Source: Macrostomum hystrix (taxonomy: Eukaryota > Animalia > Platyhelminthes). Taken from it: DNA of 64,000 nucleotides. The DNA lies in the NCBI GenBank assembly GCA_950097015.1, contig CATNEN010000029.1, positions 496,001 to 560,000 on the forward strand, read 5' to 3'. Positions 1 to 59,100 of this stretch are shown piece after piece (position 1 is the stretch's first letter; the number at the start of each line of letters is the position of its first letter). The position numbers were made by a program, and so were the translations under genes. Under the pieces are notes generated by a model that was not told the DNA's origin, searched no databases, and was given only the letters and a program-made list of their open reading frames with translations.

Positions 1-1986
1 CGCTTTACCCCTCCGATCCTTCAGTTCGCTACCCTCCGATCCTTCAGTTCGATACCCTCCTATCCTTCAGTTCGATACCCTCCGATCCTACAGTTCGATA
101 CCCTCCGATCCTTAGTTCGATACCCTCCGATCCTCAGTTCGATACCCTCCTATCCTTAGTTCGATACCCTCCTATCCTTCAGTTCGATACCCTCCGATCC
201 TTCAGTTCGATACCCTCCGATCCTTCAGTTCGCTACCCTCCGATCCTTAGTTCGATACCCTCCTATCCTTCAGTTCGATACCCTCCGATCCTTAGTTCGA
301 TACCCTCCTATCCTTCAGTTCGATACCCTCCGATCCTCAGTTCGATACCCTCCGATCCTTAGTTCGATACCCTCCTATCCTTCAGTTCGATACCCTCCGA
401 TCCTACAGTTCGATACCCTCCGATCCTTAGTTCGATACCCTCCTATCCTTAGTTCGATACCCTCCTATCCTTCAGTTCGATACCCTCCGATCCTTCAGTT
501 CGATACCCTCCGATCCTTAGTTCGATACCCTCCTATCCTTCAGTTCGATACCCTCCGATCCTACAGTTCGATACCTCCGATCCTTAGTTCGATACCCTCC
601 TATCCTTAGTTCGATACCCTCCTATCCTTCAGTTCGATACCCTCCGATCCTTCAGTTCGATACCCCTCCGATCCTTCAGTTCGCTACCCTCCTATCCTTC
701 AGTTCGATACCCTCCGATCCTACAGTTCGATACCCTCCGATCCTTAGTTCGATACCCTCCGATCCTTCAGTTCGATACCCTCCCGATCCTTCAGTTCGAT
801 ACCCTCCGATCCTTCAGTTCGATACCCTCCGATCCTTCAGTTCGATACCCTCCGATCCTTCAGTTCGATACCCTCCGATCCTTCAGTTCGATACCCTCCG
901 ATCCTTCAGTTCGATACCCTCCTATCCTTCAGTTCGATACCCTCCGATTCTACAGTTCGATACCCTCCGATCCTTCAGTTCGCTACCCTCCGATCCTTCA
1001 GTCGCTACCCTCCGATCCTTCAGTTCGATACCCTCCGATCCTTCAGTTCGCTACCCTCCGATCCTTCAGTTCGCTACCCTCCGATCCTTAGTTCGATACC
1101 CTCCTATCCTTCAGTTCGATACCCTCCGATCCTTAGTTCGATACCCTCCTATCCTTAGTTCGATACCCTCCGATCCTCAGTTCGATACCCTCCGATCCTT
1201 AGTTCGATACCCTCCTATCCTTCAGTTCGATACCCTCCGATCCTACAGTTCGATACCCTCCGATCCTTAGTTCGATACCCTCCTATCCTTAGTTCGATAC
1301 CCTCCTATCCTTCAGTTCGATACCCTCCGATCCTTCAGTTCGATACCCTCCGATCCTTAGTTCGATACCCTCCTATCCTTCAGTTCGATACCCTCCGATC
1401 CTTCAGTTTCGATACCCTCCGATCCTTAGTTCGATACCCTCCTATCCTTAGTTCGATACCCTCCTATCCTTCAGTTCGATACCCTCCGATCCTTCAGTTC
1501 GATACCCCTCCGATCCTTCAGTTCGATACCCTCGATCCTTCAGTTCGATACCCTCCGATCCTTCAGTTCGATACCCTCCGATCCTTCAGTTCGATACCCT
1601 CCTATCCTTCAGTTCGATACCCTCCTATCCTACAGTTCGATACCCTCCGATCCTTCAGTTGGCTTTACCCTCCGATCCTTCAGTTCGATACCCTCCGATC
1701 CTTCAGTTGGCTTTACCCTCCGATCCTTCAGTTCGATACCCTCCGATCCTTCAGTTCGATACCCTCCGATCCTTCAGTTCGATACCCTCCGATCCTTCAG
1801 TTCGATACCCTCCTATCCTTCAGTTCGATACCCTCCGATCCTTCAGTTCGATACCCTCCTATCCTTCAGTTTCGATACCCTCCTATCCTACAGTTCGATA
1901 CCCTCCGATCCTTTAGTTGGCTTTACCCTCCGATCCTTCAGTTCGATACCCTCCGATCCTTCAGTTGGCTTTACCCTCCGATCCTT
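1..1986. repeat. 23-bp minisatellite array (TTCGATACCCTCCGATCCTTCAG)n; begins at the window edge and may extend beyond it
   Basis: Direct reading. Period is 23, with 22-bp deletion variants and CCTATCC/CTACAG variants. It stops mid-unit (..GATCCTT) at the 5' LTR. Confidence 0.98.
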
Positions 1987-2210
1987 TGTAGCAGCAAATT
2001 CACTTCTTTCTTTTAACTCTTAATATTTAAAGATTCAAATGGTACTTTTATTTCCCCCCTTACCGCTAATTTGTCTATGACCCTTGTTATCGATAGGTAC
2101 AGTTGCCCGGTTAAGACTTAAATGTAACCCCACGACAAAACTAAATAAACAAGCTCAAGCTTTTGCCGACTCTTAAATTTAACAGCAACATTTGTAGCAA
2201 GTCAGCTACA
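1987..2210 (+). repeat. 5' LTR (224 bp)
   Basis: TGTAGC...GCTACA 6-bp terminal inverted repeat. Differs from the 3' LTR by 3 substitutions and 5 homopolymer-length indels (manual alignment). Confidence 0.97.
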
Positions 2211-2214
2211 AAAT

Positions 2215-2225
2215 TGGTAGCAGAG
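2215..2225 (+). promoter_or_regulatory. Primer-binding site complementary to initiator tRNA-Met
   Basis: TGGTAGCAGAG, 4 nt after the 5' LTR, is the reverse complement of the eukaryotic tRNAi-Met 3' end (CUCUGCUACCA). Confidence 0.9.
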
Positions 2226-2234
2226 CGTTTCATC

Positions 2235-3088
2235 ATGCCAAAAACCAGGAGACACGAACCAGGCACAGCAGAAGCCCAGCGTCAACAGCGGCAACCCGAT
2301 GAAACGCCTCAAATGCCCGAGCGACAAATCACACAGCACGCAGTCAAACCGCCCGCGTTCTATCGCAAGTCCCCAGAAATATGGTTCCGTCAGTTAGAAT
2401 CCCAGTTCACGTTAGCCGGCATCGTCAATCCGACAACCAAGTTCCACCACACACTAGCCGCTCTACCCGAAGATGTGGCTTGCTCAATCGATCTGGATAC
2501 GGGAGACTATGCCTCACTTAAGTCGGCGGTGCTCGAATCGTTACGCGTAAACCGGCACCAGCGCATCGAAGAGGCACTGGCTGCAGTTGAACTCGGCGAC
2601 CGCCGTCCATCGCAACTGGTTAACGACATCAAGCGCAAGTTCGGCGAAGTCGGTCTGCAAGTCGATGATAGCATCGTCAAGTCTCGGCTCCTGTCGGCAC
2701 TCCCGACCCACATCCGTTCCGCATTAGTCGGACACGAAGACGCGCCGCTGGATGCTTTCTCTAAAATCTCCGACAGCATGCTGGCCGTGTCAGCCAGCAC
2801 AACGCCGTTCACCCCAATCAACCGGGCCATCGCACCCGGCCAGTTGTCCGCAGGAAACAGAAAAGTCCGTTTCGAGGAGCTAGACGCGATGATTTTCAAG
2901 CCAACCGAAATACTCTCCGCCGCCCTAAAATCTGCAACGGTCACCTGTACTACGCCGCGGAAGCTCGCACCTGCCGACCGTGGTGTCAGTGGCCTGGACC
3001 GAAGCTGACGATAACACTCGCCAGCCGCCAACCTACTCCGACTCAATCCCGCTCAAGCAGCCCAACGCCGACAGCGGCGTCAAACTAG
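2235..3088 (+). CDS. gag: Retrotransposon Gag (one frameshift at ~2810-2930; CHCC zinc knuckle 2933-2986; stop TAG 3086-3088)
   Basis: ATG 2235 opens [27 protein letters not shown], a typical gypsy Gag N-terminus. The -1 frame gives [26 protein letters not shown]. Confidence 0.9.
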
Positions 3089-6000
3089 TGGGTCACGTGC
3101 CTCGGCCGAGCCGCGACCCCTCCCAGGCCAACACGTTATTACTGTTGTGTCAAATTCTCCGTTCACCCGTTTCCTTTATAGTTGACACCGGTGCTGAGCG
3201 ATCGCTGCTCCCACTAAAATTCGCTCCTCAAAATCTGTTGACAACCACACATGTGAAACTCTGTAGCATCGATGGTCGAGAAATCCCAACTTTCGGCCAA
3301 TGCTGCGTCACTCTTACAATTCCTGGTCTCCGTAGACCCTACCCTGCATCATTTATCGTTACCGACACTGCGCCAATTCTCGGAACCGACTTCTTCCTCA
3401 AGTTTGGGTTCCTCATCGATCTGAACACACGACGCATACAAGACCCAGCGACATCTCTTTACGCCAACCTCAGTCCATCGAGTGTGCAACTTCCCAAAAT
3501 CAACGCCACAACTCAACTGGAAGCGACCACACCACTCAAAAATTTCCCGCGATTACTGGAGGCACCGGACTACACCGCGCCACCCGCCACATCTGTGCGA
3601 CACCGCATCGAGACGACAGGTGAACCTGTATTCTGTCGACCTCGCCCATTATCCCCAGCGAAGTACGAAATCGCAAAGTTGGAATTCGACAAGCTCCTCC
3701 GCTTCGGTATCGTTCGCCCCTCGGCCAGTCCCTGGGCCTCCCCGCTTCACATGGTGAAGAAGAGGGACGGCTCCTGGCGACCATGTGGAGATTATCGAGC
3801 ACTGAACGCGGCAACCAAACCAGACCGTTACCCTATTCCGAACATCAATCATTTTCACCATCGTCTACATGGAGCGAAGTGTTCAGCACCCTTGACCTGG
3901 TTAAGGCCTACCACTTCATCCCGATTGCAGACGAAGATGTTGAGAAAACAGCGATTTGCACGCCATTCGGTTCTTTCGAATACATTCGCATGCCATTCGG
4001 CCTGAGAAACGCCGCCAGCACATTCCAGCGATACGTAGATTCCGTCTTTAGCGACCTCCCGTTCGTAACATCTTACATCGACGACATCTTGGTACACAGC
4101 CAGTCACGCGAAGAACATCAAGCGCACATCGAAGAGGTGCTGCGACGTCTAAGCGACAAAGGCTTGGGCGTCAACTCTGAAAAGTGCCATTTCTTTCGCG
4201 ATTCAGTGGAGTTTCTTGGGTACTTCGTCACTGCTGACGGCATCCGACCGCTTCCGAACCGTAGTCGAAGCACTGCGGAAACTCGAGGCTCCCACTGACA
4301 TGCAATCACTACGGCGCTACCTTGGCATGTTCGGTTTTTATCAGCGGTGCATTCCTAATTATGCTGAGATCGCCACCCCGCTACGACAACTCGTCACGGC
4401 GCCATTCAATTGGACGAAGCGACACGACGATGCTTGGAAAGAACTCCAGGACAGTCTGGCGAACGCAGTCACCCTGACTTTTCCTCAAGCCAATGCCACC
4501 TTCACAATCACAACCGACGCCCAGCGCCACTGCCATCGGCGCAGGCATTGCATCAGGTGGTAGCCGAGCAATCTTCCCCTTGGCATTCTACTCTCCGCAA
4601 GCTCTCTGACACGGAAGCAGCCTTACAGCACTTTTGATCGGGAACTGCTGGCTATTTTTGCTGCGGTCAAGACTGGAAATACATGATCCAAGCCAACAAA
4701 CCACAGTGTTCTGCGACCAACAAGCCATCAGCGGAGCGTTTAGAAATAAGAAAGAACGGTTTTCCGATCGACAAACAACGCCAGCTATCCGTCATCACGG
4801 AGTTTGTGAGGCGACATCCATCCACATTTCAGGCAAGGACAACATCGTAGCCGACACGCTATCACGACCGGTTTACCCTATCCCAGAACCCGCCACCAAC
4901 CACAATTCGACGCTTGTCTGACCTTCCTCAATGTGTGGGACCTGCCAGCCGTTGCACGAGCACAGAAGGAAAACCCGGATGATGAACCCCAGACAGGCCG
5001 TTTCAGCAACTTCGACATTGGAATCAAGGACTTCCCACTGCGATGCGAAATCTCGCAGACAAACCCACGTCCCGTCATCCCTAGGACTCTCCGACGCGCT
5101 GTTTTTGACTCGCTGCATGCATTTCGCACAATCCTGGCCGCAAAGGCCACGCAACGACTCATCGTTTATCGTTTTTCTGGCTAGGTATGGCTAACGACAT
5201 CAAGTGGGTAGTCGAATGTCAACAGTGCCGCAGTGCAAGACAGGTCGTCACGTCCAACGCCCGTGCAACAGCTTCCAGCACCCTCTCAACGCTTCACGAC
5301 GGTCCATATCGATTTAGTCGGACCACTGCCACCCCCAGAGTCGACCGACGTTAGTCCCAGACCTCGCTACTTGCCTCACAAGTGGTCGATGCATATTCAC
5401 GTTTGGATTGAAGCTGCCCCTCTCATTGACATCACCGCCACTTCAGTCGCGTGCGCCTTCCTAGAATCCTGGGATTTCTCGGTTTGGCCCACCATTGACG
5501 CTTGGTGACCGATCAAGGCGCGCAGTTCCGCGCGGAGCTCATGCAAAAACCTGGCGACACTGCTCGGAATCCATCACATCCGCACTTCAGCCTACAATCC
5601 GAGGGCAAATGGCATCGTCGAGCGACCCACCGAACATTAAAGTCCGGGCTGAAAGCACGTGGCCAGAACTGGCTGCAGCAGCTACCCATCGTGCTTCTCG
5701 GAAATGCGCATTTTTGCAGACGAGACAGGTGCATCGCCATTCTCTATCGTTACCGGTGAACAACATTAGTCCCACCTGTAGTTGCCGAACACCTCCTCTG
5801 TCAAGGAACTTTCCACAAGACTGCACCAACTTTTTTTTTTCCGTATCGCCAACCACGAACGCGCGAGGTAAGAATTCATCTGCCAGCAGACTTGGCTGCA
5901 TGCACCCAGCGTCTGGTTGCGACTAGATCGAGTTCGACGTCCCCTAGAAGCACCCTACCAGGGACCCTATGCAGTGTTGGAGAGACACGAAACGACATTA

Positions 6001-6212
6001 CATTGGAAATCAACGGCAAGCCTTCTGTAGTGTCTATCGATCGAGTGAAACCAGCTACACTCCCAGCACCGGTACCAATTAGCAAAGCACCAGCAACTAC
6101 TGTATCACCGGAAAACCCACCGGCAGCAAACATACTTGCTAAAACGCTTCCCACGTTCGGTTTTTCTACAGAACCATCTGTTAACTGTTTTACGCAACTG
6201 AGCCATTATTAA
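3080..6212 (+). pseudogene. pol: Retrotransposon Pol (PR-RT-RNase H-IN), interrupted by multiple 1-nt frameshifts in this assembly
   Basis: Protease IVDTGAERS (DTG at 3184). RT motifs [30 protein letters not shown] and YIDD (4074-4085). RNase H TTDA/DRELLA. Integrase HIDLVGPLP and VTDQGAQF. LEAPYQGPY at 5944-5970, then SIDRVKPA. Confidence 0.93.
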
Positions 6213-6282
6213 ACCTAACTGAAAATTCGTTTTCTAACTGTTTCATAACAACAATCAAAACCTTTGCATAAACTCCGTTTTT

Positions 6283-7227: not shown

Positions 7228-7659
7228 GGCAACTAATTGGATTTTCAGTTCGATTGCAGCACCGCTGGCTCGGCTGCTAGGTGGTCTGCAGTGATATTAA
7301 TGGTGTCATTTGACTGAATTTCACTGAAATAACTAATTTGGTTATTAGCTAAATTGACAGGTCAGTTGAGGGCTTCAGAAATCGTTAAACTCGATTGGCG
7401 TCAAATTTAGTGCATCTTTTCAACTAGATTCATAGTTTATTGGTAGACACGCCAGAAGATAAGTTAGTAGATTGGGCGATCGGTAAGTAGATAAGCAGCA
7501 GGTAGATTAGTAGATAGATTAACTAGGTAAGGCGGTAAATTTAGCTTGAATAAATTGTTAGATTGGTAGATAGCTGAGCAGAAAATGGTTAGATTAGTCT
7601 AACCAAAGCTGTAGATTGGTTAGTAGTAAAATTGTTAGATTAGTAGATATTTGAGTAGA

Positions 7660-8310
7660 TAAGCTGTTAGATTGGTAGATTGGTAAGCAGATAAGCTGTT
7701 AGATTTGTAGATTGGTAAGCAGATAAGCTGTTAGATTTGTAGATTGGTAAGCAGATAAGCTGTTAGATTGGTAGATTGGTAAGCAGATAAGCTGTTAGAT
7801 TTGTAGATTGGTAAGCAGATAAGCTGTTAGATTTGTAGATTGGTAAGCAGATAAGCTGTTAGATTTGTAGATTGGTAACCAGATAAGCTGTTAGATTTGT
7901 AGATTGGTAAGCAGATAAGCTGTTAGATTTGTAGATTGGTAAGCAGATAAGATGTTAGATTTGTAGATTGGTAACCAGATAAGCTGTTAGATTTGTAGAT
8001 TGTTAAGCAGATAAGCTGTTAGATTTGTAGATTGGTAAGCAGATAAGCTGTTAGATTTGTAGATTGGTAAGCAGATAAGCTGTTAGATTTGTAGATTAGT
8101 AAGCAGATAAGATGTTAGATTTGTAGATTAGTAAGCAGATAAGCTGTTAGATTTATAGATTGGTAAGCAGATAAGCTGTTAGATTTGTAGATTGGTAAGC
8201 AGATAAGCTGTTAGATTTGTAGATTGGTAACCAGATAAGATGTTAGATTTGTAGATTAGTAACCAGATAAGATGTTAGATTTGTACATTGTTAAGCAGAT
8301 AAGATGTTAG
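7660..8310. repeat. 32-bp minisatellite (GATTGGTAAGCAGATAAGCTGTTAGATTTGTA)n
   Basis: About 20 copies, preceded by a degenerate GTAGATT-rich lead-in from ~7460. Lies within the putative 5'-UTR intron. Confidence 0.95.
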
Positions 8311-8479
8311 ACACGAGTGTATAAGTAAGTTGACTTTAGAAACTTACCGGGAGATCAATCGATAAAATGAACTAACTGAACCGTGAGGCAATTTTTCACA
8401 ATGCAACCAAGCAATCCTTTGCTTAGCAAAAGCAAACGCAGACTGGCAGAAAAAGAACAACAATATTTTAGTAGTTTTG

Positions 8480-9184: not shown

Positions 9185-12100
9185 TTAGGAGACAGGTATT
9201 AGGAGACACTCAAAGCTACAATAAGTATAGGAGACACTCAAAGCTACCAATAAGTATTAGGAGAACACTCAAAGCTACCAATAAGTATGGGAGACAATCA
9301 AAGCTACCAATAAGTATTAGCAGACACTCAAAGCTTACAATCAGTATTAGGAGACACTCAAGCTACCAATAAGTATTAGGAGACACTCAAGCTACCAATA
9401 AGTATTGGGAGACAAATCAAAGCTACCAAGAGTATTAGCAGACACTCAAAGCTACCAATAAGTATTAGGAGACAAATCAAAGCAACCAATAAGTATTAGG
9501 AGGACACTCAAGGCTACCAAGAGGAATTAGGAGACACTCAAAGCAACCAATAAGTATTAGGAGACAATCAAGCTACCAATAAGTATTAGGCGACACTCAA
9601 AGCTACCAATCAGTATTAGGAGACACTCAAAGCTACCAAGAGGTATTAGGAGACACTCAAAGCTACCAAGAGGTATTAGGAGACAAATCAAAGCAAACCA
9701 ATAATATTAGGAGACAAATCAAAGCTACCAATAAGTTATAGGAGACAATCAAAGCTACCAATAAGTATAGGAGACACTCAAAGCAAATAATAAGTATTAG
9801 GAGACAAATCAAAAGCTACCAATAAGTATTAGGGAGACACTCAAAGCTACCAATAAGTATTAGGAGACACTCAAAGCTACCAATAAGTATTAGAAAACAA
9901 ATCAAAGCAAACAATAAGTATTATGGAGACTAATCAAAGCAACCAATAAGTTATTAGGGAGACAATCAAAGCTACCAATGAAGTATTAGGAGACAATCAA
10001 AGCTACCAATAAGTATTAGGAGACACTCAAAGCAACCAATAAGTATTAGGAGACAAATCAAAGCTACCAATAAGTATTAGGAGACAAATCAAAGCAACCA
10101 ATAAGTATTAGGAGACAAATCAAAGCTACCAATAGTATTAGGAGACACTCAAAGCTACCAATAAGTAGTAGGAGACACTCAAAGCAACCAATAAGTATAG
10201 GAGACCAAATCAAAGCTACCAATAAGTATTAGGAGACACTCAAGCAACCAATAAGTATTAGGGAGACAAATCAAAGCTACCAATAAGTATTAGGAGACAC
10301 TCAAAGCTACCAATCAGTATTAGGAGACACTCAAAGCTACCAATCAGTATTAGGAGACACTCAAAGCTACCAATAAGTATTAGGAGACAGTCAAAGCTAC
10401 CAATAAGTATTAGGGACACTCAAAGCTACCAATAAGTTATAGGAGACAGTCAAAGCTACCAATAAGTATTAGGAGACACTCAAAGCTACAATAAGTATTT
10501 GGAGACACTCAAAGCAACCAATAATTATTAGGAGACACTCAAAGCTACCAATAAGTATAGGAGACAAATCAAGCTACCAATAAGTATTAGGAGACACTTC
10601 AAAGCTACCAAGTAAGTATTAGGCGACACTCAAAGCAACCAATAAGTATTAGGAGACAAATCAAAGCTACCAATAAGTATTAGGAGACACTCAAGCTACC
10701 AATCAGTATTAGGAGACACTCAAAGCTACCAATCAGTAATTAGGAGACACTCAAAAGCTACCAATAAGTATTAGGGAGACACTCAAGCTACCAATCAGTA
10801 TATTAGGAGACAAATCAAGCTACCAATCAGTATTAGGAGACAAAATCAAAGCATACCAATAAGTATTAGGAGACACTCAAAGCTACCAATAAGTATTAGG
10901 AGACACTCAAAGCTACCGATAAGTATTAGGAGACACTCAAAGCTACCAATAAGTATTAGGAGACACTCAAAGCTACCGATAAGTATTAGGAGACACTCAA
11001 AGCTACCAATAAGTATTAGGAGACACTCAAAGCTACCGATAAGTATTAGGAGACACTCAAAGCTACCAATCAGTAGTAGGAGACACTCAAAGCTACCAAT
11101 AAGTATTAGGAGACACTCAAAGCAACCAATAAGTAATTAGGAGACACTCAAAGCTACCAATAAGTATTAGGAGACACTCAAAGCTACCAATAAGTAGTTA
11201 GGAGACACTCAAAGCTACCAATAAGTATTAGGAGACAGTCAAAGCACCAATACTTATTAGGAGACACTCCAAGCTACCGATAAGTATTAGGAGACACTCA
11301 AAGCTACCAATAAGTATTAGGGGACACTCAAAGCTACCGATAAGTATTAGGAGACACTCAAAGCTACCAATCAGTATTTAGGAGACACTCAAGCTACCAA
11401 TAAGTATGTAGAGACACTCAAAGCAACCAATAAGTATTAGGAGACACTTAAAGCTACCAATAAGTATTAGGAGGACACTCAAAGCTACCAATAAGTATTA
11501 GAGACAGTCAAAGACAACCAATAAGTATTAGGGACACTCAAAGCTACCAATAAGTATTAGGAGACACTCAAAGCTACCAATAAGTATTAGGAAGACACTC
11601 AAAGGCAACCAATAAGTATTAGGAGACACTCAAAGCAACCAATAAGTATTAGGAGACACTCAAAGCTACCAATAAGTATTAGGGAGACACTCAAGCTACC
11701 AATAAGTAGTAGAGACACTCAAAGCTACCAAGAGGTATTAGGAGACACTCAAAGCTCCAATAAGTATTAGAGACACTTAAAGCTACCAATAAGTATTAGG
11801 AGACACTCAAAGCTACCGATAAGTATTAGGAGAACACTCAAAGCTACCAATAAGTATTAGGAGACCTCAAAGCTACCGATAAGTATTAGGAGACACTCAA
11901 AGCTACCAATAAGTATTAGGAGACACTCAAAGCTACCAAGAGGTATTAGAGACACTCAAAGCTACCAATAAGTATTAGGAGACACTTAAGCTACCAATAA
12001 GTATTAGTGAGACAAATCAAAGCTACCAATAAGGATTAGGAGACACTCAAAGCAACAATAAGTATTAGGAGACACTCAAGGCAACCAATAAGTATTAGGA

Positions 12101-41940: not shown

Positions 41941-42721
41941 AGTTCCCATCTTGGTCTCATCAATTTGCCTCCCTTCTTCTATTTTCTAGTATCTGGGAAT
42001 AATGAAATTGCATCACCAGTATCATGACAGTTTAATGTTTTGTTTTAGCTAAGTCTTTTTTAATCTTCAACCAAAGAAATTAATAATTTGCGATCATGTG
42101 ATTTCGAAAAACTGAAGTAATGAGAAAAACAGCTTACATTATTTAATTGAGTTTCAGTCAGTCATAACTTCGATGGAAGTCTAGCGATAAAATCCCAGCT
42201 AGCAGTTGAAGGGATTGAGCAGCAGCAACAGGTGCTCCAATCGGTGGTCGTATCTCCGGGGTGTCGTTAGCAATGAAACCACAGTGAAAAGTCTAAGCTT
42301 TTGTGTCCAGTTCACATTCAGCAAAAAATCGTCGTGGTTCTTTCAGTCCGGGCTTTATCATGCAGTGCACAAGATCAGCTAGGGACAGAGAAGTAGGTAC
42401 TTCAGGACGCACAGGAATGCCTAATGACATTTGGTCGCATAGCAACAGCGACTGTGCTGGTCAGCAAAGCAGCATGCCAGCCATGAATTATGCAGCAACA
42501 GATTTTTCTAACGGAGAAGCGACACAGGAATGATAAAAACTGCCTAAGCACACTCAGAGCACACATGACCAGGGCTTGCTTTTAGTAAGGTTTAAACTAA
42601 TTACTGGTCTGCACTTCACACTTTAGATGCAGGGTATTAAAGTAGCAAATCAGGGACTCTAACAGAACTAGCGAAACTTTACCTACTCTTATTTTAGTAA
42701 GCCTCAAATAAGAGGCTTATA

Positions 42722-45700: not shown

Positions 45701-46198
45701 TCAATCCACTTCCGCTAATTTTAGTAAGCCTAGATCTCAACCCACTTCCGCTAATTTTAGTAAGCCTAGATCTCAACCCACTTCCGCTAATTTTAGCAAG
45801 CCTAGTTCTCAACCCACTTCCGCTAATTTTAGTAAGCCTAGATCTCAACCCACTTCCGCTAACTTTAGTAAGCCTAGTTCTCAACCCACTTCCGCTAACT
45901 TTAGTAAGCCTAGTTCTCAACCCACTTCCGCTAACTTTAGTAAGCCTAGTTCTCAACCCACTTCCGCTAACTTTAGTAAGCCTAGTTCTCAACCCACTTC
46001 CGCTAATTTTAGTAAGCCTAGATCTCAACCCACTTCCGCTAACTTTAGTAAGCCTAGTTCTCAACCCACTTCCGCTAACTTTAGTAAGCCTAGTTCTCAA
46101 CCCACTTCCGCTAACTTTAGTAAGCCTTGTTCTCAACCCACTTCCGCTAATTTTAGCAAGCCTAGTTCTCAACCCACTTCCGCTAATTTTAGTAAGCC
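42722..46198. repeat. 36-bp minisatellite (CTTCCGCTAATTTTAGCAAGCCTAGTTCTCAACCCA)n, ~96 copies
   Basis: Highly homogeneous, with variants clustered by region. Confidence 0.98.
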
Positions 46199-46626
46199 CC
46201 GTCATAGCTCAAAAGGCCTTAAAATAAAGGCAGAGGTAGAGAAAAATACAATTTTAGTTTTGTTGATGAGGCAATGAATTGCATAACAGATGCTGTAACC
46301 ATCCGCTGTGCATTCAAACTGGAAACTGGGAAATTCTTACGGCCGAATAAATTTATTTAGAAGTGCAAGAAACACTGCGTATGTATGTATTTTGAAAAAT
46401 AGCAAATCAAATATAGACAGGGTTAGGATAAGTGTTGCCAGGGGTATCTTATAACTGGCAAGGTGGAGACAACATAAAGAGTCAAACAGATAGCAATGTT
46501 TTTAAGTTCTATTTATCAAGTGGATGGTATTAACTTCACACACAAAAATCGAGAGATATGTGCTACTCTACCCTTTCATGCAGTAGTTTGTAGTGTAAAA
46601 AATATTTTTTGTAATTAAAAAAGTAT

Positions 46627-46895
46627 GCTGTTGTAGCCTTGAGGTTAGAGCGGCGGACTCAGGACTTGTAGGTCGGGGGTTCGATTCCTGACTCCACTGA
46701 AACAATTTGTGTCCTTTAGCAAGACACTTAACTCTGCATTGCTTCAGTTCACCCAGCTGTTAAATGGGTAACAGAATTTGCTGGGATAATTAAAGGTGGG
46801 TGTGGCGTCCCCCCAGTCCATGGACTGAACAGCCGTGCTGTCGGCTGCATATCTGGCCCAATGGGGCAGGTGTGATAATTAATTATTATTATTAT
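46627..46895 (+). mobile_element. tRNA-headed CORE-SINE with (ATT)n tail
   Basis: A-box TAGCCTTGAGGTTAGAGC, B-box GGTTCGATTCC, and TGTGTCCTTTAGCAAGACACTTAACTCTGCATTGCTTCAGTTCACCCAGCTGTTAAATGGGTA, which matches the MIR-type CORE pattern. Ends AATTATTATTATTAT. Confidence 0.85.
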
Positions 46896-47859
46896 CAAAT
46901 TATTGCAGTGTAAATATAATTATTGCACATAAAACAACAACAAAAAACCTAGTGCTATGAATATGAAAAATAATTACTCAAAACTGACTTAATGAACTAA
47001 CGAGATCGCATTAAAAAAAGCGCGATAAGCAGCTATTGCCAAGCAATTATATACACATATTGCACTACTGATTACAACAAACTAAGTAGTGCATATCGCT
47101 TTCGAGTATTATATAGCAAAAAGGTAGCCAAAAAAGACAATATTGGTATAATCACCCAACATTAAGCTGCTGATGAAACAGGAAAAAATGCTTTGGAAAC
47201 AGAAAAATGATTAAAAACACTTGATTGACTGTCGAAGCGGTGAAGGCAGATGATAAAAATTTTTTCCTTTAGAAGAACGAGCCCTATTCGTTAACAATAA
47301 CGTCATTTAATCCACTTAGTTACAGTCTGTCTGACTAGAAGAAAAATGTAACATTTAAAAAACTGATTGCAGAATAATAGACTGCTTGATTGCTTTAATA
47401 TTTATAACTAATAAAGCATTATCTAAGTAAATAGGCATGCAGGTATAAAGCCAATCGATGGGAGTATTCAAAACAAGCTGCATAAATAATAATACTAGAT
47501 TAACAAGAGCTATTCGCTTTATTAAAATAATATCGTGCTATGCGCGAAAGAGGCAAAACTGATCAAGTCTATTGTTGTTGTTGTTGTTTAAAACTTGCAC
47601 TGATAATAAAATACGTTGATTAAGGAACAAATCACAAGCTTTCACAATCTGGTAATATACATTACAAATCTACTCTGTTTGAATTATCATAGATTTGGAA
47701 AATTTTCATTGCATAAAAATGTAGGCAATAAAGTACGACAGGTAAAAAAAAACAATAAATTAATTAAGCTTAATAACTCAATGCGGCGAACAAAAAAAGA
47801 TAATTACAAAAACCAAGTAACATCAACTTTGTCTGAATACATTTTTCACATCATTCAGT

Positions 47860-47990
47860 CTAATTTTAGCTAACCTTCGGTGACGTCATCCTAATCTATT
47901 TTTAGCTATCACTTAGTGACGTCAACCTAATCTATTTTTAGCTAACTGTCACTGACGTCATACTGATCTATTTTAGCTGACCTTCACTGC
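47860..47990. repeat. Three-copy 36-bp proto-repeat, each copy containing TGACGTCA
   Basis: TGACGTCA at 47881, 47917 and 47953 (exact period 36), downstream of the prominin stop. Confidence 0.8.
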
Positions 47991-48215
47991 CTTCTTTCTG
48001 GTCTATCTATTTATTAGCTTCATTTGCTTACCAATTCATTTACATATTCTGCATTTCTGGTGATTACAACACATGACTTGTATGCTATGAACCAACAACT
48101 GGCCTTAAAAAACACGAGAAAATTACGTGATTGCTTAATAAAGCATAAACAAAGACTTATAAACATAAATTCGTACCCATTCTCATTACTCTTAACTCTA
48201 TAAAATAAGTCAACT

Positions 48216-50126
48216 TTAATAGTCATATGCCTCTAAAGCGTAGGGTGGCAGTTGGCTATAGCGCTGCTGCTGTGGCAAATGCTGATGCGGATTCTGCTGC
48301 TGTTGTTGCATATGCTGCAGTTGCAACTGTTGCATTTGCAACTGCTGACAGCGCCTATTAGAGCTGGCTACAGCGACTGCGGCCGCCTCTGAATCGCGAG
48401 GATGAGCCAGAGCCTGCTGCTGCTGCTGATTCTGTAGCCGCCTGCCGCCTCCGCCGCCCCTAGACGCCCGTTCGGCGCGGGACTTTCCTCCTCCTGTGAT
48501 TTGCGCGAGTGCGTGAGAAAAGAGTTCATTGCTATGGACTAAGTATCTTATGTAACGTAGTAGTAACGAATCTGTGAAATTCTCGAAATTCTGTGAATTC
48601 CTCGATTTCTACGCCCTATAATATTGAAGTTAGGACAGTTGCATCGTTAAACATAACAATATTTGAAGCTAAATAGACAACAAAGCTGCACTGACGCACA
48701 GTTGAATGACTTCGAAAGTTACGGGTAAAAGTGGCACTAAATCTACCAGTAAGTGCATTCGGTGCAGCCGGATAAAACAATGGGTCTATTTATGCCCCTG
48801 CCAACTGCTCAGAAAATAAAATCTAATAGTTTCAAGTTTCATTACCTAACGCAAGCGATAGTTCTACAGTATGACGTCTGATTACATTAAGCGACATTCA
48901 AGCACTGACGAGCAAATTGCAAAAACTTCGATTTTTTAATAAAACCTTTAAAAAAAACCATGCGAAAAACACATACAATTACGAGTACTAATTATTATCT
49001 ACTATTACCTTACTTCCGCTAATTTTAGCAAGCCTAGGGTAGTGCTCACCTCACTTCCGCTAATTTGGATAGTGCTCACCTCACTTCCGCTAATTTGGGT
49101 AGCGCTCACCCCACTTCCGCTTATTTGGGTAGTGCTCACCTCACTTCCGCTAATTTGGGTAGTGCTCACCTCACTTCCGCTTATTTGGGTAGTGCTCACC
49201 TCACTTCCGCTAATTTGGGTAGTGCTCACCTCACTTCCGCTAATTTGGGTAGTGCTCACCCCACTTCCGCTAATTTGGGTAGTGCTCACCTCACTTCCGC
49301 TAATTTGGGTAGTGCTCACCTCACTTCCGCTTATTTGGGTAGTGCTCACCTCACTTCCGCTAATTTGGGTAGTGCTCACCTCACTTCCGCTAATTTGGGT
49401 AGTGCTCACCCCACTTCCGCTAATTTGGGTAGTGCTCAACTCACTTCCGCTTATTTGGGTAGTGCCCACCTCACTTCCGCTTATTTGGGTAGTGCTCCTT
49501 CTCAGCTGAAATTCCCTATGTTGGCTACTCCCTGTTTAAAGTGCTTGAGGTAAAAACAAAGTTATTTAGTCTAGAGGAAAAATTGGCAACCCAGAAAATT
49601 TCCAAGAACACAACCATAGAGGAAAAAGCTAACTAAAATAACTTACAAGAGCTGAGCTATGCAGGCCAAAGGGCTTAGCCAAATAAAATAGCTTTTCTGG
49701 AGTATATTGTACTAAAGTTCTCGAAGTAATGTAGATCTTGGTGAATTCAGTCAATTTCTCTATTTTCTAACTGTGGACGTATTGTGATAAACCCATATAG
49801 GACTCTAAATTCAAAGGCCGAAACAGTGGCCCAAGTGAAGCATAAAAAAGGAATGAGATCGATATAAAACATTCAGAAGAACAGTTAGAAGAAAAAGCGA
49901 TTACAGCCACGTGCGACATTAAATTGTTCATGAAACTTGATTATATTATAATTAATATGCGCACGATGACTACTGTTAGTAGGCGTCAGGAAAATGCTCG
50001 AATCTTGTGATTTTAAATTCTAGAGCGATTCAAGACGTACCTTTGGCGGAAGCGGTCGCTTTGCCTCGCCTATGCCGCCTGCGGTTATGACGATTTTTGT
50101 TTAGTTTTGTCAGCTTTAAAAAAATA

Positions 50127-50158
<32 letters not shown>

Positions 50159-53100
50159 AGTCAGTCAGTCAGTCAGTCATGCCAGGGGTCAGAGATAGAA
50201 TAGATAACCTGCCGTATGCGCTTACAACATTGAAGCACTGTTTCTCGGAAAGCAATGCTTTGATTGCCCAGAAAAAGAATCGGCATAGAAGGCGGAATCC
50301 AGAACTGAGAGGCAAAGATTGCTATTTAAATTCCGGAGCCGTTAATAAAGAATGTCAAGCCATGCGAAAATTGTAGGGCGGGCGACGGAGGTATAAAAGT
50401 ACATCGGCAAACTGCAGCTAGAGCCACAATTGGCATGTGGATTCATAACTCACCCGTCCAGAGGTACCGTGTCACTCGGGCAGAATCCCTGGTAGGTCAT
50501 GTAGTCCCTGCGGGAACAAATAGGAGTACAGGGAATATTTAATTTAATTTATCGAGATGACAAATAATCCTTCCCATCAAGTTATCCTATTTTATCCCAT
50601 CAATTTATCCCAATTTATCCCATTTTATCGCATCAAGCTATCCCATTTTATACCATCAAGTTATCACATCCTATCCCATCAAGTTATCACATCCTATCCC
50701 ATCAAGTTATCACATCCTATCCCATCAAATTATCCCATCGAATCCCATTAAGTTATTCAATCCCATCCCATCAAGTTATCCAATCCCACCCCATCAAATT
50801 ATCCCATCGAATCCCATTAAGTTATCCAATCCCACCCCATCAAGTTATCCAATCCCACCCCATCAAGTTATCCAATCCCACCCCATCAAGTTATCCAATC
50901 CCACCCCATCAAGTTATCCAATCCCACCCCATCAAGTTATCCAATCCCACCCCATCAAGTTATCCAATCCCACCCCATCAAGTTATCCAATCCCACCCCA
51001 TCAAGTTATCCAATCCCACCCCATCAAGTTATCCAATCCCACCCCATCAAGTTATCCAATCCCACCCCATCAAGTTATCCAATCCCACCCCATCAAGTTA
51101 TCCAATCCCACCCCATCAAGTTATCCAATCCCACCCCATCAAGTTATCCAATCCCACCCCATCAAGTTATCCAATCCCACCCCATCAAGTTATCCAATCC
51201 CACCCCATCAAGTTATCCAATCCCACCCCATCAAGTTATCCCATCCTTTACGATCCCGTCAAGTTATTCCATCCTATCCCATCAAGCTATCTCATCCACT
51301 CATTATGAGTTAGTTATCCCACCGAATCTCATCAAGTTATCCCATACTATCCAATAAAGGTATCCCATCCCATCCCATCCCATTCTATCCCTTTAAGTTA
51401 TCCCATCCCATCAAATCATCCCATCCTATCCGATCACGATATCTAATCCACTCGTTATCAGTGACTTAACCTATCCATTTGTTTCCAAATATATATTCCA
51501 GACATTCCTTCCCTTTGCGTGATCACGTCCAATTTAATCAGCTTCTTCCCAATTAGAAATTCCATCACATTGACACTGAAAGTTCTTATCTAATCCATTA
51601 TTCCCTTAACAGTAGAAAGAGCAAAGGGGTATTTCAAATACGAACTAACTTTCAAAAAGGTCTAAGTCGGAGATCTATTTTAATCCTCAATCTTATCCAC
51701 AAACAATCCTACACGTGTTTTAGTAACTTCCCTCCCCCCCTAAAAAACAGAAAAATACTGTGCTCACGGTTCCTCATAGTTGCGCTCATACTTGCTGCTC
51801 TTGCGGTAGAGATTAACCAGCTTCAGGCTGAACAGCAGACAGGCCGGCAGGCAGATCAGGAACAGGCCCAAGCCGGCCCAGAAGCCGTTGAATGGTCGCA
51901 GGGCGGAGCGGCAGGGTGCGCGGGCGGCGCTATTTAAACCGGCGCTAATCGCCACACAATCGGCTGCGTCGGAGAGGACGCTGGCGACGGAGGCGGCGAG
52001 GCCTGCGGAGAGGCTGGCTGACAGATTATCGCCTGTACCGGCAGCGATGGCATAGGTGATGGCCTCGGACTTTTGAGATTCGGCTCGCTCCAACTGCTGG
52101 GCAAGTCGGCTGCCGCCGCGGCTGTCGACCGGGCCGACCATTTGAACCAAGCGACTGCGAGCGTCGGCTAATTGTTGAACTCGACGGCTCTGATTGGCTA
52201 GACGTTCTAGAGCGCGTTTCAAAGTGCTGTCGAGATTGTCGACAATGCGAGACCAGGCCTGGTGGTCGGCTAGATTGGCAGCCGCTGCCATCGAAACCCG
52301 GTGCAGAGCGGCCATAGCAGCGCCGTCCGGGTCGCCGTGTAGTACAGCGCCAGATGACACGGATGACGAAGGAATAGTGAGAGCGGCGGAGCAGGCGGCG
52401 AAGTCGATGCTGTTATCGGCGGCGGCGGCGGCGGCAGCAGCCAGCTCGGTGAGGTTCGGCTGAAGTCGAAGTCCGGAAACCAGGTCATTGCGCTGGTCAT
52501 TCAGAAGCTGGACGGAGCGATTGGTGAGGCGACGATAAGCAAAGTCCGGAAGCGTGCCTTCCAGCAGGGCCGTCAGGTTCAACGCGCCGGCGAGGCCTGG
52601 TCGGACAGCGGCGTCGCTGCCAGTGGATCGACAGTCGCCGAGCAGAGCCTCAAACGGGGCTCCGTTTTCGCGCACTCGATCAGCCCGAAAGCGGACAGTG
52701 TAGAGGTTTGCGGCGGCGTCGAGAGCGCGATAGCCAGCTGGGCCAGCGCGGCCAGTCAGGTAGCGACAGAGCTCCGTGTCTGCGGACAATTAAGACAAGG
52801 TAGGCGATTAGGATAGATAGTCAGTGTTAGACTAGCTGTTACAAGTCAGTGTTAGACAATTTGTTTCAAGACAGTATAAGAAATTGAGTCGCCGTCTTGT
52901 TTTTACACAGTCACCTTGTTAGACAAAGTGTTGTCAGTGTTAGACAAAGTGTTGTCAGTGTTAGACAATGTGTTGTCAGTGTTAGACAATGTGTTGTCAG
53001 TGTTAGACAAAGTGTTGTCAGTGTTAGACAAAGTGTTGTCAGTGTTAGACAAAGTGTTGTCAGTGTTAGACAATGTTAGATAATGTTAGAAACAGGCTCC

Positions 53101-56100
53101 ACTCACCGAGAACGCCGCCAGCAAGGAACAGCAGCAGGGTGGCCAGCATGAGCAACCAGGCCAGTAGGAAGGCCAAGCCGCTGCCAGCCAGCAGCAGGTA
53201 GGCGGCCGCACCCCGATTGCAGCACCTGGCGTCATCGTAGGGAGCCTCACCGCAGCAGCCGAAAGCAAGGCCCAAATAGTACAGCACCAGTATAGCCAGG
53301 GCTAGGCTGGCCATGGAGGCGAAAACAATATGCCAGTAGGTGCTAACATCCGCGAAGAGGTCTTCAATGCTGCGATAAGGTTGGCTGCCACGGTTGGTCG
53401 GGCCCAGGCCGGCGGCCACATCGGCGCGAACAAATTCAACACTCTCCGCCAGGCGACCAGCCGCTGCCCAAACCGGTTCAAACTGGTCCGCTGGACTAGC
53501 CGAAGAATTCACAGTCGCAATGGCTTCGGCGATGGGACCATTGGTGGTGTCCAAGCGAGCGACTACCGCTTTGGCCAAGTCATCCAGGCTAGTCTCCGAT
53601 GCGGCCAGACTGTTCGAGAGGCGCCGTACTGCGCCGCTGACTGTGCCCACAGGCAGCCAGGGCGATAGCTGCGAGAAGAGAGAACACTTGTGCTAGATCT
53701 CTGATCCCAGAAACTCAACAAGACAAGTATCACCATAAATCGATACGATCTATAAAAAGCTAAAATCCTAATCATCCAGTAGAGACACAAATCCCAATCA
53801 TACAGTAGAGACACAAATCCCCAATCATCCAGTAGAGACACGTATCCCCAATCATCCAGTAGAGACACGTATCCTCAATCATCCAGTAGAGACACAAATC
53901 CTCAATCATCCAGTAGAGACACGTATCCTCAATCATCCAGAAGAGACACGTATCCCAATCATCCAGAAGAGACACGTATCCCCAATCATCCAGTAGAGAC
54001 ACGTATCCTCAATCATCCAGTAGAGACACGTATCCCCAATCATCCAGTAGAGACACGTATCCCCAATCATCCAGTAGAGACACGTATCCCCAATCATCCA
54101 GTAGAGACACGTATCCCAATCATCCAGTAGAGACACGTATCCTCAATCATCCAGTAGAGACACGTATCCTCAATCATCCAGTAGAGACACAGATTCCAAC
54201 AACTGACAAGAGTTCGCAGATTATAGCAAGGGATAGAAATCCAGAAACCTCAACTGGAGGCTTAATCCCCAATATTAAAGTGGAGCCGTTCGCTCACCTG
54301 AGCATTGCAAAGCTCAGGCGCAGAGTCCATATCGCCGCCCGGCCTCATCTTAGCCAGCCGGTCCCGCAGGAGCTCGCAGTCGCTGCGATCGGCGGCTTCT
54401 GGACAGCCGCCAACTTGTTGGTTTTGTCGCAGCAGTTCGCTAGCCTGCCTGAGCGTGTCATTCAAATGGCCAAGATCGTCCCGCAGAGCCGGCCAAGTCA
54501 TGCGCAAAGCGTCGGCCAGTCGTCCAGAATCGGCCAGCAGGTGAACAGCGGCGGTCGCGTTGTCTAGCGGGGCTCGAACTCCCAACCTGGCGACGAAGCG
54601 ATCGCGCAGTTGATTGGCAGCGGCTGCCACAGCCGGTCTGACCACGGCCGCGGCCAGGGCGGCTGTGCGGACGCTGTCATTCCTGGCCCGATCCGGGGCG
54701 GCCTGCAGCTGGGCGGCTGCGGCGGCCAGGCCCCGAGTTGCTTGGAGAAAGACGTAGTCTGGCCGTTTGGGATCTAGCGAGTTGCGCAACAGCTGATTGG
54801 AGATGAAGGCCAGGACAATGCCGCAGCTGGAGGGATGAGAAGAACAGTGCGTATTAACGATTGGCTCATTTAACACTTTTAACTAGTCGGCAAAATTTGA
54901 CACTGTTTAACATTCCTGGATTTTAATGTTTTTTGGGGTTTAACGTTTGTGGTTTTTAACGTTCCTGGGTTTAAACGTTTGTTTTTTAACCTTCTTGGGT
55001 TTTAACGTTAATGGGTTTAAACGCTCCTGGGTTTTAGCGTTAGTGGATTTGAAATGTTCCTTTGTTTTTTACGTTCCTGAGTTTAAACGTTTGTGTTTTT
55101 TAACGTTCCTGGGTTTTAACGTTCCTGAGTTTTAACGCTTGTGGATTTTAACGTTACTGGGTTTTAATGTTTTTGGTTTTTAACGTTCCTGGATTTTAAC
55201 GTTTCTGGTTTTTAACGTTCCTGGGTTTTAACGAGTGTGGGTTTTTAATGATTTTGTGTTTTCAAGTTTTCAGACTTTAACGTTTGAGACTTTTTTTACA
55301 TTTGTGGATATGAACGTTTGTGGGTTATGGAACATAATTTGCGTGAATTATTTAGCGCCTGATGATTAATTTACTAAGCATATTGTTTTTTATATTTAAA
55401 TTCTGCTAATTGAATAAATCATCAAGCCGAACTGAATAGCAGAAAAATTGTATTCCTCATCGAAAAAAATCTGGCTGGCGTTCTGGTTGAGTAAAAATAA
55501 ATTAACAGCCTGGGCAGGGTCAAACTCTTGATGTTATTTATGAGAAATATGTTTATGTTGATTAATCTATCCATAGTTAATATGAGGTATTATAATAAAC
55601 TTTAACCAACTAATTTTGTTGTTAATGATGACACACCGGAGATCCTGTATGTCTTCATTTTATCCCACATTTAGAATGTGGGATAAGACTGGTACTTAGC
55701 AGTTAGTTAAGTACCAGTACAAAATTTCTAACTAAATTAGAAGATTCGGTTGTAAGGCAGAGTGAAAAATATGTTTACAAAAGGAGTTTATTAATAGAAA
55801 AACAGCTAGTAGAAAACACTGAAATAGTTTATAGCGAAAGCTAAATCTGATTTCACTAGCTAAAGTTATCTAAAAACAGTTTTATAGAAAGCAACACAGA
55901 CTTGGACTCAAGACGCAGTACTGAAATTGCATCTTTAATTCTAGGTTAAACCTAAGCGGCGTGGTTTGCACATATAAAGAGCTTAGAGCTAAGCTTTTAT
56001 TCTCATAGTCAAGAACAAAGCCATGGCATTACCGTTGAAAGTATGAAATTAGTTTTTTAGGTCAATATATATATATATATATATATATATAAGAGCCTAG

Positions 56101-59100
56101 AATGATTGATAATGGCCTATGCAGCTGAGTTGACCAATTAGCACTGATTGGAAGAGCGCTGAGATTGCTAGCCTACATAATAGATGCTATCATTTAGGAT
56201 TCTATGAGCCAATTATTGGCATTTCAAAACTGCCACATAGCAGCTAGAGTTACAGACCGCAGTACTCACAGCATAACGGTGCACAAAACAGTCAGGGAGG
56301 CGCCGTAGCAGTTTCGCCTACACCTGGCGCCCTTTCTCTCCATGTGATGCAATCGGCCGCCGCATTTGCCGCAGCAGCAGCGGCAGCAGAACACGCAGCA
56401 GCCGGCCAATGGCACCGCTATGACAAATAATAGGCCCAGGCAGGTGAGAATGGCGTAGCCAAGCATGCTCAGTGCGTAGCGACGTGACGCCTGCAGAGAG
56501 ACATTTAGATAATTGCGTTATGGTCATCTGGGAAGGGAAGGGCGATGATTGAATGATCTGGGAGGGGAAGGGAGATGACTGAATGATCTGGGAGGGGAAG
56601 GGAGATGACTGAATGATCTGGGAGGGGAAGGGAGATGACTGAATGATCTGGGAGGGGAAGGGCAATGACTGAATGATCTGGGAGGGGAAGGGCGATGACT
56701 GAATGATCTGGGAGGGGAAGGGCAATGACTGAATGATCTGGGAGGGGAAGGGCAATGACTGAATGATCTGGGAGGGGAAGGGCGATGACTGAATGATCTG
56801 GGAGGGGAAGGGCAACTTGACTGAATGATCTGGGAGGGGAAGGGCAATGACTGAATGATCTGGGAGGGGAAGGGCAATGACTGAATGATCTGGGAGGGGA
56901 AGGGCAATGACTGAATGATCTGGGAGGGGAAGGGCGATGACTGAATGATCTGGGAGGGGAAGGGCAATGACTGAATGATCTGGGAGGGGAAGGGAGATGA
57001 CTGAATGATCTGGGAGGGGAAGGGAGATGACTGAATGATCTGGGAGGGGAAGGGCAATGACTGAATGATCTGGGAGGGGAAGGGCGATGACTGAATGATC
57101 TGGGAGGGGAAGGGCGATGACTGAATGATCTGGGAGGGGAAGGGAGATGACTGAATGATCTGGGAGGGGAAGGGAGATGACTGAATGATCTGGGAGGGGA
57201 AGGGCAATGACTGAATGATCTGGGAGGGGAAGGGCAATGACTGAATGATCTGGGAGGGGAAGGGCGATGACTGAATGATCTGGGAGGGGAAGGGCAACTT
57301 GACTGAATGATCTGGGAGGGGAAGGGCAATGACTGAATGATCTGGGAGGGGAAGGGCAATGACTGAATGATCTGGGAGGGGAAGGGCAATGACTGAATGA
57401 TCTGGGAGGGGAAGGGCGATGACTGAATGATCTGGGAGGGGAAGGGCAATGACTGAATGATCTGGGAGGGGAAGGGAGATGACTGAATGATCTGGGAGGG
57501 GAAGGGAGATGACTGAATGATCTGGGAGGGGAAGGGCAATGACTGAATGATCTGGGAGGGGAAGGGCGATGACTGAATGATCTGGGAGGGGAAGGGAGAT
57601 GACTGAATGATCTGGGAGGGGAAGGGAGATGACTGAATGATCTGGGAGGGGAAGGGCAATGACTGAATGATCTGGGAGGGGAAGGGCAACTTGACTGAAT
57701 GATCTGGGAGGGGAAGGGCAATGACTGAATGATCTGGGAGGGGAAGGGCAATGACTGAATGATCTGGGAGGGGAAGGGCAATGACTGAATGATCTGGGAG
57801 GGGAAGGGCGATGACTGAATGATCTGGGAGGGGAAGGGCGATGACTGAATGATCTGGGAGGGGAAGGGCAATGACTGAATGATCTGGGAGGGGAAGGGAG
57901 ATGACTGAATGATCTGGGAGGGGAAGGGAGATGACTGAATGATCTGGGAGGGGAAGGGCAATGACTGAATGATCTGGGAGGGGAAGGGCAATGACTGAAT
58001 GATCTGGGAGGGGAAGGGCAATGACTGAATGATCTGGGAGGGGAAGGGCGATGACTGAATGATCTGGGAGGGGAAGGGCAATGACTGAATGATCTGGGAG
58101 GGGAAGGGCAACTTGACTGAATGATCTGGGAGGGGAAGGGCAATGACTGAATGATCTGGGAGGGGAAGGGCAATGACTGAATGATCTGGGAGGGGAAGGG
58201 CAATGACTGAATGATCTGGGAGGGGAAGGGCGATGACTGAATGATCTGGGAGGGGAAGGGCAATGACTGAATGATCTGGGAGGGGAAGGGCGATGACTGA
58301 ATGATCTGGGAGGGGAAGGGCAATGACTGAATGATCTGGGAGGGGAAGGGCAATGACTGAATGATCTGGGAGGGGAAGGGCAATGACTGAATGATCTGGG
58401 AGGGTAATGGCGTTGGGTCACAGGTCTGGTTGTAGTGGTGTGACAAGTGCAATTGTTCCATTACATTTACCTTGGTTTTATTATTTTCTGTGTTTGCCAT
58501 AGCCGAATGGGCTGGACAAACAGTATTTCTTATTACTGGGCAAACAGTGTGAGTGCAATTTATGGAGACGTGATGAAAATAAAACTGTAAATTGACATAG
58601 CTTCAAAAGAGCATTAAAACTGTATTACCTTTTGCCAGTCAGAAAAGTACTCCACAACCAGGCTGTGATCTAAAATTAATAAGCAGAAATATCGAGACTT
58701 GATCACCTCAAATCCCTGTAAAAAAATTCGGCTGCTTCTTCGGCGGTTTTTTTGGTGCAAAATAGGAGTGGAATCAACCATAATCCCCCCTATCTCGCAA
58801 GAGTTAAAGAAACCACCCAGGAAGCAGCCGATGTAACCGTAAATTGTGCGGAAACCGCCGAAGAATCACCCGAACCAGTGGCCCATGGGACAACCAGAGA
58901 ATTATTTACGGGCGATTCCTCGGCGGTTTCTGAGCATGGAATCTTCCGAACTGGAGGATTCTTTGGGTGATTCCATTTCGCCACCAAGAAGCACCGAGAA
59001 AACGCCCAGTTGGGTAGATTCTAAGCATGGAATCATCCGATTGGTATGTTTCCAGCGTTCGGCTGTTTCTTTTTCTGGAAACACCGCAGATCCAACTGGA

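Follow-up and report, generated by a model that had tools for sequence, protein, structure and literature searches.

The DNA analysed here is a stretch of 64,000 bp from the flatworm Macrostomum hystrix (contig CATNEN010000029.1, here C29, positions 496,001 to 560,000; hereafter the window, with positions counted from its first base), in which the introns of a TBL1/TBL1XR1-like gene and of a prominin gene, as well as the DNA outside them, carry many tandem arrays of short units. The window represents an extreme, genome-wide load of ordinary minisatellites and does not point to a new kind of genetic element. The arrays are a genome-wide habit of non-coding DNA rather than an intron system, and a minority of them belongs to dispersed, probably transposon-linked families.

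Tandem arrays in the window and in the genome

Using Tandem Repeats Finder (TRF) with a score of at least 100, 46 rows were obtained for the window, which merged into 18 arrays with periods of 16-36 bp. Together the arrays sum to 30,471 bp, or 47.6% of the window, and coverage is still 33.6% when a single 13.5-kb array is left out. Copy numbers range from 3.7 (47859-47989) to 448.9 (9196-22699), with matches of 71-98%, and all 18 arrays consist of head-to-tail units within the ~10-100 bp typical of minisatellites of the variable number tandem repeat (VNTR) type. These figures agree with a first-pass annotation of the sequence, which had counted about 16 arrays with units of 17-36 bp, ~47% coverage and 3 to ~450 copies. 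The same annotation had spoken of one private minisatellite per intron and of a general process that sets intron size, and a tie to introns is not supported by the census: ten arrays (those at 9-22699 and 35268-51412), amounting to 23,569 of the 30,471 array bp (77%), are in the coding introns of neither TBL1 nor prominin, their placement being judged by open reading frames (ORFs) and Pfam, so that introns in untranslated regions (UTRs) are possible. The phenomenon is therefore not bound to introns.

The same TRF threshold was applied to a sample of twelve arbitrary 10-kb stretches located at position 1,000,001 of twelve contigs (120 kb). In this sample 57 arrays were found, covering 31.1% of the sequence (bootstrap 95% confidence interval 22-40%). 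Units are 15-40 bp long in 46 of these 57, which account for 89% of array bp; microsatellites contribute 0.7% and units longer than 100 bp 1.7%. The window is typical of the genome save for one giant array, and the narrow band of unit lengths first noticed there is a property of the genome. By way of comparison, masked repeats of M. hystrix have been published as 22.9% in total (RepeatMasker) and left uncharacterised (PMC10468722), and simple plus tandem repeats of Macrostomum lignano have been put at 15% (PMC5730564). A literature text search for Macrostomum together with 'minisatellite' returned nothing relevant.

Arrays and intron length in the TBL1 and prominin genes

The exons of both genes were searched singly, and continuity of the reading frame was judged from exon translations and splice-site sequences rather than from a joined spliced model. 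The TBL1/TBL1XR1-like gene is laid out as follows, all introns being on the plus strand.

27889-34633, plus strand: TBL1/TBL1XR1-like gene, nine coding exons; exon 1 at 27889-27946, stop in the last exon at ~34604-34633
Intron 1, 84 bp: without array
Intron 2, 472 bp: without array; contains a ~310-bp dispersed element
28715-29026: the ~310-bp dispersed element of intron 2, with copies of 77-84% in sample loci L003, L006, L007 and L009
Intron 3, 96 bp: without array
Intron 4, 79 bp: without array
Intron 5, 29520-31940, 2421 bp: 96% array, with end remnants of 43 and 42 bp
29563-31898: array of intron 5, 34 bp x 69 (TRF)
Intron 6, 32266-33412, 1147 bp: 95% array, with end remnants of 33 and 23 bp
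32299-33389: array of intron 6, 29 bp x 37.6, member of a large dispersed family
Intron 7, 322 bp: nascent array of 173 bp, absent from the first-pass annotation
33640-33812: the nascent array of intron 7, 29/38 bp, 2-4 copies (TRF)
Intron 8, 601 bp: 81% array
34009-34496: array of intron 8, 20 bp x 24, beginning 6 bp past the donor GT

Exon 1 encodes a LisH-type N-terminus, and Pfam recognises WD40 in the gene. A word search with exon 6 returned TBL1XR1 homologues at 72-79% only, with no close Macrostomum relative among them. It had been observed before that introns 5, 6 and 8 are filled with arrays, that the short introns (1, 3 and 4) are free of them, and that exons and splice sites stay intact; all three observations hold, every TBL1 boundary that was read being GT-AG. 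Once stripped of their arrays, introns 5 and 6 are reduced to 85 and 56 bp, respectively, compared with 79-96 bp for the array-free introns. The only mid-sized TBL1 intron without an array is explained by the ~310-bp element, of which copies occur in 4 of the 12 sample loci. Each TBL1 intron longer than ~100 bp is a base of ~80-100 bp enlarged by an array or by a dispersed element.

Just upstream of TBL1, a 408-bp stretch (26902-27307) is 94% identical to part of sample locus L002 (7205-7608) on another contig and is a dispersed repeat.

The prominin gene lies on the opposite strand, with all four introns on the minus strand.

59453-51767, minus strand: prominin gene, Pfam PF05478 on three blocks, splice sites read
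59453-59210, 56490-56270, ~54825-54298, 53668-53107 and 52779-51767, minus strand: the five prominin coding blocks, separated by four introns
Intron 1, 2719 bp: 30-mer array
56526-58411: array of intron 1, 30 bp x 62.6, 35 bp from the acceptor
Intron 2, ~1445 bp: 16/32-mer array
54906-55248: array of intron 2, 16/32 bp, degenerate (TRF)
Intron 3, 629 bp: 27-mer array
53763-54190: array of intron 3, 27 bp x 15.7 (TRF)
Intron 4, 327 bp: 21-mer array
52917-53073: array of intron 4, 21 bp x 7.5, member of a dispersed family

The first-pass annotation was right in assigning a different array to each prominin intron that it described, but its numbering ('introns 2-6 and 8') fails because the gene consists of five coding blocks and four introns on the minus strand. 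Taking TBL1 and prominin together, the arrays start 6-798 bp past the donors and stop 23-107 bp ahead of the acceptors, and none of them includes exon sequence.

Further prominin-like genes are found at C38:19.18-19.19 Mb, C38:31.98-32.06 Mb and C24:6.58-6.59 Mb, at least three of them clustered on C38; in M. hystrix, prominin forms a multigene family.

Signs of growth in place

In several arrays the first or last tenth is less identical to the consensus than the core, i.e. the edges are less homogenised than the interior. The first-pass annotation had described homogeneous cores with degenerate flanks, and such margins were indeed recovered at the sites it cited (7420-7610, ~31665-31898 and both ends of 50578-51412), with a further one extending beyond the TRF bounds after 54906-55248; about half of the arrays, however, end abruptly. 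Within the 13.5-kb array (9196-22699), homogeneity climbs steadily from 5′ to 3′, adjacent units are the most alike, and similarity falls with distance. Moreover, higher-order periods are present: the 34-mer array of TBL1 intron 5 has one of 644 bp, the 30-mer array in the first prominin intron one of 422 bp, and the 29-mer array has periods of 58, 116 and 232 bp. Such periods, together with the decay at the edges and the likeness of neighbouring units, are what textbooks describe for slippage and unequal exchange. The earlier proposal that the arrays grew in place is consistent with the edge decay, with the higher-order periods and with the intron remnants of ~56-85 bp.

Hairpin-driven slippage was considered as a general cause and rejected: for 69 units folded as DNA and compared with shuffles, the mean z was -0.10 (p = 0.38), and 4 of the 69 units, among them the 21-mer, had z < -2.

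A second copy of the region on another contig

Bases 1 to ~44,300 of contig C4, when reversed, are a near-identical copy of the window from ~7.6 to 51.8 kb. The coordinate sums of C29 and C4 stay within 4 bp across 526.0-545.1 kb of C29, which includes ~8 kb of arrays, and differ by 98 bp across 503.7-526.0 kb, which includes the 13.5-kb array. Over 5.8 kb of aligned sequence, 4 substitutions were counted in 3746 bp of non-array DNA, as against 19 in 2092 bp of array DNA, the latter accompanied by unit-sized indels of +34, +36 and -71. The arrays are about eight times more substituted than their flanks, and the net shift in length is at most ~100 bp over ~26 kb. The arrays thus change faster inside than their flanks do, with a stable net length. 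Since both contigs carry the same arrays at near-equal length, the arrays are not assembly noise. With 0.1% substitutions in unique DNA, the C4 copy is either a residual haplotig or a redundancy of the published assembly. If it is an allele, the loci are not hypervariable; as an assembly duplicate it would tell us less.

Private and dispersed units

A comparison of 70 units from the window and from the twelve sample loci (2415 pairs) confirmed that the units are mostly unrelated to one another. BLAST found 3 similar pairs of the 2415, and in a more sensitive circular-alignment test 11 pairs exceeded the 99.9th percentile of shuffles, compared with 2.4 expected, most of them in a loose purine-rich group of 15-23-mers. 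To this group, which also has the window array at 35268-35905, belong the 16-bp units of L007:589-1032 and L010:3481-4699, which are 95.6% identical on different contigs. A core motif common to the units had been suggested by eye and was rejected, the k-mer excess being modest (the commonest 8-mers are found in 4 units out of 70) and the similar pairs numbering 11 against 2.4.

Seven window units were searched for and scored across the assembly of 220,453,370 bp (42 contigs); the 30-mer of 9196-22699 gave too many candidates for scoring.

34-mer, TBL1 intron 5: matches only C29 itself and the duplicate contig C4
30-mer at 49037: matches only the neighbouring 36-mer array and C4
20-mer, TBL1 intron 8: three loci, 75-79%
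30-mer, prominin intron 1: four loci, 74-75%
32-mer at 7610: clearly related to a single locus, C3:7.107 Mb (81-82%), with 73-74% at three others
21-mer, prominin intron 4: arrays at 79-85% on C20, C3 and C38; ~12 more loci at 72-77%
29-mer, TBL1 intron 6: 140 first-look candidates; at least 20 distinct loci, 84-91%

The matches of the 20-mer and of the prominin 30-mer are near chance level by a binomial estimate that assumes ~10^5 arrays. The seven units therefore comprise two without relatives, two with near-chance matches, one with a single clear cousin and two in dispersed families. It follows that the 'locus-private' character attributed to the units holds for the 34-mer and the 30-mer at 49037 and breaks down for the 29-mer and the 21-mer, and that local capture is not universal.

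Arrays of the 29-mer family form pairs in opposite orientation on C1 (25,346,570-25,347,002 and 25,348,434-25,349,069) and on C34 (6,214,246-6,214,562 and 6,216,885-6,217,376), the members of a pair being 1.4-2.3 kb apart. Likewise, two arrays of the 21-mer family lie inverted at C20:92,762-94,555, ~420 bp apart and near the contig end, in a foldback-like arrangement. Because the dispersed families sit elsewhere as inverted pairs, foldback arms are probably one source of arrays. Dispersal of the subrepeat over many loci, as expected of foldback elements, was seen with the 29-mer and the 21-mer, but with neither the 34-mer nor the 30-mer at 49037.

A transposon as carrier of the 21-mer family was rejected: at the four loci read, homology reaches the exact edges of the arrays and no further, with flanks that are unrelated. 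A foldback structure in the window or in the samples was rejected as well, a self-comparison of the window having given no inverted repeat among minus-strand matches at E<=1e-6, and the 12 sample loci containing no array with an inverted partner.

Other arrays and elements of the window

The remaining features of the window are the following.

9-1986: 23 bp x 86.6 array, truncated by the window start, outside recognised genes
2163-6212, plus strand: retrotransposon fragment (Pfam: gag-like DUF7041, aspartyl protease and reverse transcriptase) in overlapping frames, between two arrays and separate from them
7610-8311: 32 bp x 21.9 array, degenerate along its left side (~7420-7610)
9196-22699: 30 bp x 449 array of 13.5 kb, upstream of TBL1 exon 1
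35268-35905: 17 bp x 36 array, between the 3′ ends of two convergent genes, TBL1 and dynein light chain
36562-37110: 21 bp x 26 array, between the same convergent 3′ ends
37569-37900, minus strand: dynein light chain type 1 gene (Pfam PF01221), two exons
40613-41908: 21 bp x 61 array, outside recognised genes
42724-46198: 36 bp x 96.5 array, first of a local trio, direct orientation
46630-46836: dispersed repeat of ~207 bp, resembling a short interspersed element (SINE), between arrays; more than 1600 first-look candidates genome-wide, ~94% identity
47859-47989: 36 bp x 3.7 array, middle of the trio, its likeness to the other two judged by eye only
49037-49497: 30 bp x 15.4 array, third of the trio, direct orientation
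50578-51412: 23/46 bp array, with a homogeneous core at 50653-51246 and degenerate margins

Within the trio, the 36-mer array at 42724-46198 and the 30-mer array at 49037-49497 match at 72-78% and have about half a unit in common; the trio (42.7-49.5 kb) looks like a single old array that has since been split and has diverged. The 23-mer array at 9-1986 has a weak relative (71%) in sample locus L004, on a different contig. By eye, a piece near 27177-27353 is similar to the SINE-like repeat.

Origin of the arrays

We consider it fairly probable that the arrays are ordinary minisatellites at an extraordinary density, mostly of local origin and grown in place, with a minority from dispersed families. 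M. hystrix would then carry independent arrays by the tens of thousands, with units of 15-40 bp, making up roughly a third of the non-coding DNA in introns and spacers alike. An array would be born by tandem duplication of a short local segment of 15-40 bp, possibly when nearby short repeats slip against each other or when a break is repaired by fill-in or end-joining. Small tandem duplications have been traced to slippage involving short non-contiguous repeats and to the filling-in of broken ends (PMC8355091), a case that serves as an analogue only. As the anatomy of the arrays shows, expansion and homogenisation then proceed in place, through replication slippage together with either unequal sister-chromatid exchange or gene conversion. 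In introns, selection may retain only ~25-45 bp beside each splice site, and introns once of ~80-100 bp may swell to 0.3-2.7 kb, leaving exons and GT-AG sites intact. The dispersed minority would probably have been delivered or seeded by the arms of foldback-type transposons.

Could transposons account for most of the arrays instead, as arms or fragments of foldback (FB/NOF-like) or other repeat-bearing elements that later diverged by concerted evolution? The 29-mer, with its 140 candidate places, at least 20 loci at 84-91% and inverted pairs on C1 and C34, as well as the 21-mer family with its inverted array pair on C20, would suit such an origin, and the arms of Drosophila FB elements have subrepeats of 10-31 bp, a size scale like that of the window units. 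Yet neither the window (E<=1e-6) nor the 12 sample loci contain inverted array pairs, five of the seven tested units are private or only weakly related, and the similarity within the 21-mer family ends at the array edges with unrelated flanks, which makes a general transposon origin unlikely. A special templated copying, whether by a rolling-circle mode on excised circles, through extrachromosomal circular DNA that reintegrates, or by a reverse transcriptase that reiterates the unit, appears quite improbable. Reinsertion of array-derived circles could produce dispersed families without flank homology, and the narrow band of unit lengths invites a mechanistic limit. However, no poly(A) tails, target-site duplications or association with a reverse transcriptase were seen, the window's only such enzyme belonging to the unrelated retroelement fragment, and the higher-order periods, edge decay and nearest-neighbour similarity match what unequal exchange and slippage predict; nothing that was seen favours the RT-templated or rolling-circle reiteration entertained in the first-pass annotation (RT, reverse transcriptase) over those two processes.

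It is very improbable that the arrays are kept for a function in splicing control, chromatin organisation or small-RNA production, hence one in nearly every long intron. Sparing of the splice-site margins and the presence of an array in each prominin intron would be in line with such a role, but the DNA outside genes is just as rich in arrays, no core motif is strongly shared and the k-mer excess is modest, and unit sequence, strand bias and position in the intron are all variable. Arrays inflated or invented by long-read errors would be conceivable in an assembly based on PacBio continuous long reads (CLR), in which C4 redundantly repeats ~44 kb of the region; such an artefact is nonetheless extremely improbable, given that two separately assembled copies agree in the order and length of the arrays, within ~100 bp over ~26 kb, and that neither the exons nor the splice sites next to the arrays are disrupted.

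Returning to ordinary minisatellites of mostly local origin, several points weigh against this reading. The 15-40-bp limit on the units is explained neither by a general hairpin tendency, which is excluded, nor by a strongly shared core motif, of which there is none. Furthermore, the intergenic status of arrays was judged by ORF and Pfam calls, and RNA data could shift some of them into UTR introns; the genome sample amounts to just 120 kb; and two of the seven tested units are in dispersed families.

More tentatively, and with considerable doubt on our part, a change of replication or repair specific to the Macrostomum lineage might have produced 15-40-bp tandem duplications at an exceptional rate, seeding roughly 10^5 independent minisatellites that would make up about a third of the genome and be the main determinant of intron length, with foldback arms as both product and vehicle. 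Candidate changes of this kind are flap or large-loop processing that has become weaker, or breaks repaired to a large extent by fill-in and end-joining.

Relation to known systems and significance

Like classical minisatellites or VNTRs, the arrays described here have head-to-tail units within 10-100 bp, are often intronic, and show concerted evolution, degenerate edges, higher-order blocks and, between the copies on C29 and C4, unit-scale indels. They differ in that their density in M. hystrix is far higher (~31% of the sample and 47.6% of the window), that no G-rich core motif is strongly shared, and that net lengths are near-identical in two copies, with no sign of hypervariability. A close parallel is offered by the intronic minisatellites of amphioxus, in which concerted evolution leaves out the array edges (PMC3087553): in Adh3 and the globins the introns have minisatellites of their own (units of 10-72 bp in Adh3), splicing is unaffected and array boundaries are unhomogenised. 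However, the amphioxus 'mirages' duplicate an exon-intron boundary, whereas the window arrays contain no exon sequence (the nearest begins 6 bp past a donor GT) and are equally common outside genes. The congeneric M. lignano was reported without a unit-length spectrum or intron anatomy (PMC5730564). As for foldback (FB/NOF-type) arms, the scale of the units is the same and two window unit families form inverted array pairs elsewhere, but the window arrays are without inverted partners, neither termini nor target-site duplications were recognised, and most tested units fall outside such families.

New from the window are the finding that a single gene contains both private and dispersed units, clearly distinct from each other, the arithmetic of the intron remnants and the comparison of two contigs. 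If the sample is representative, tandem arrays alone (~31%) exceed the published total of repeats in M. hystrix (22.9%), and arrays account for most of the intron length above a baseline of ~80-100 bp. This matters for annotating genes, mapping reads and assembling genomes in a model flatworm genus, and makes M. hystrix a natural system in which to ask what sets the birth rate and the unit length of minisatellites.

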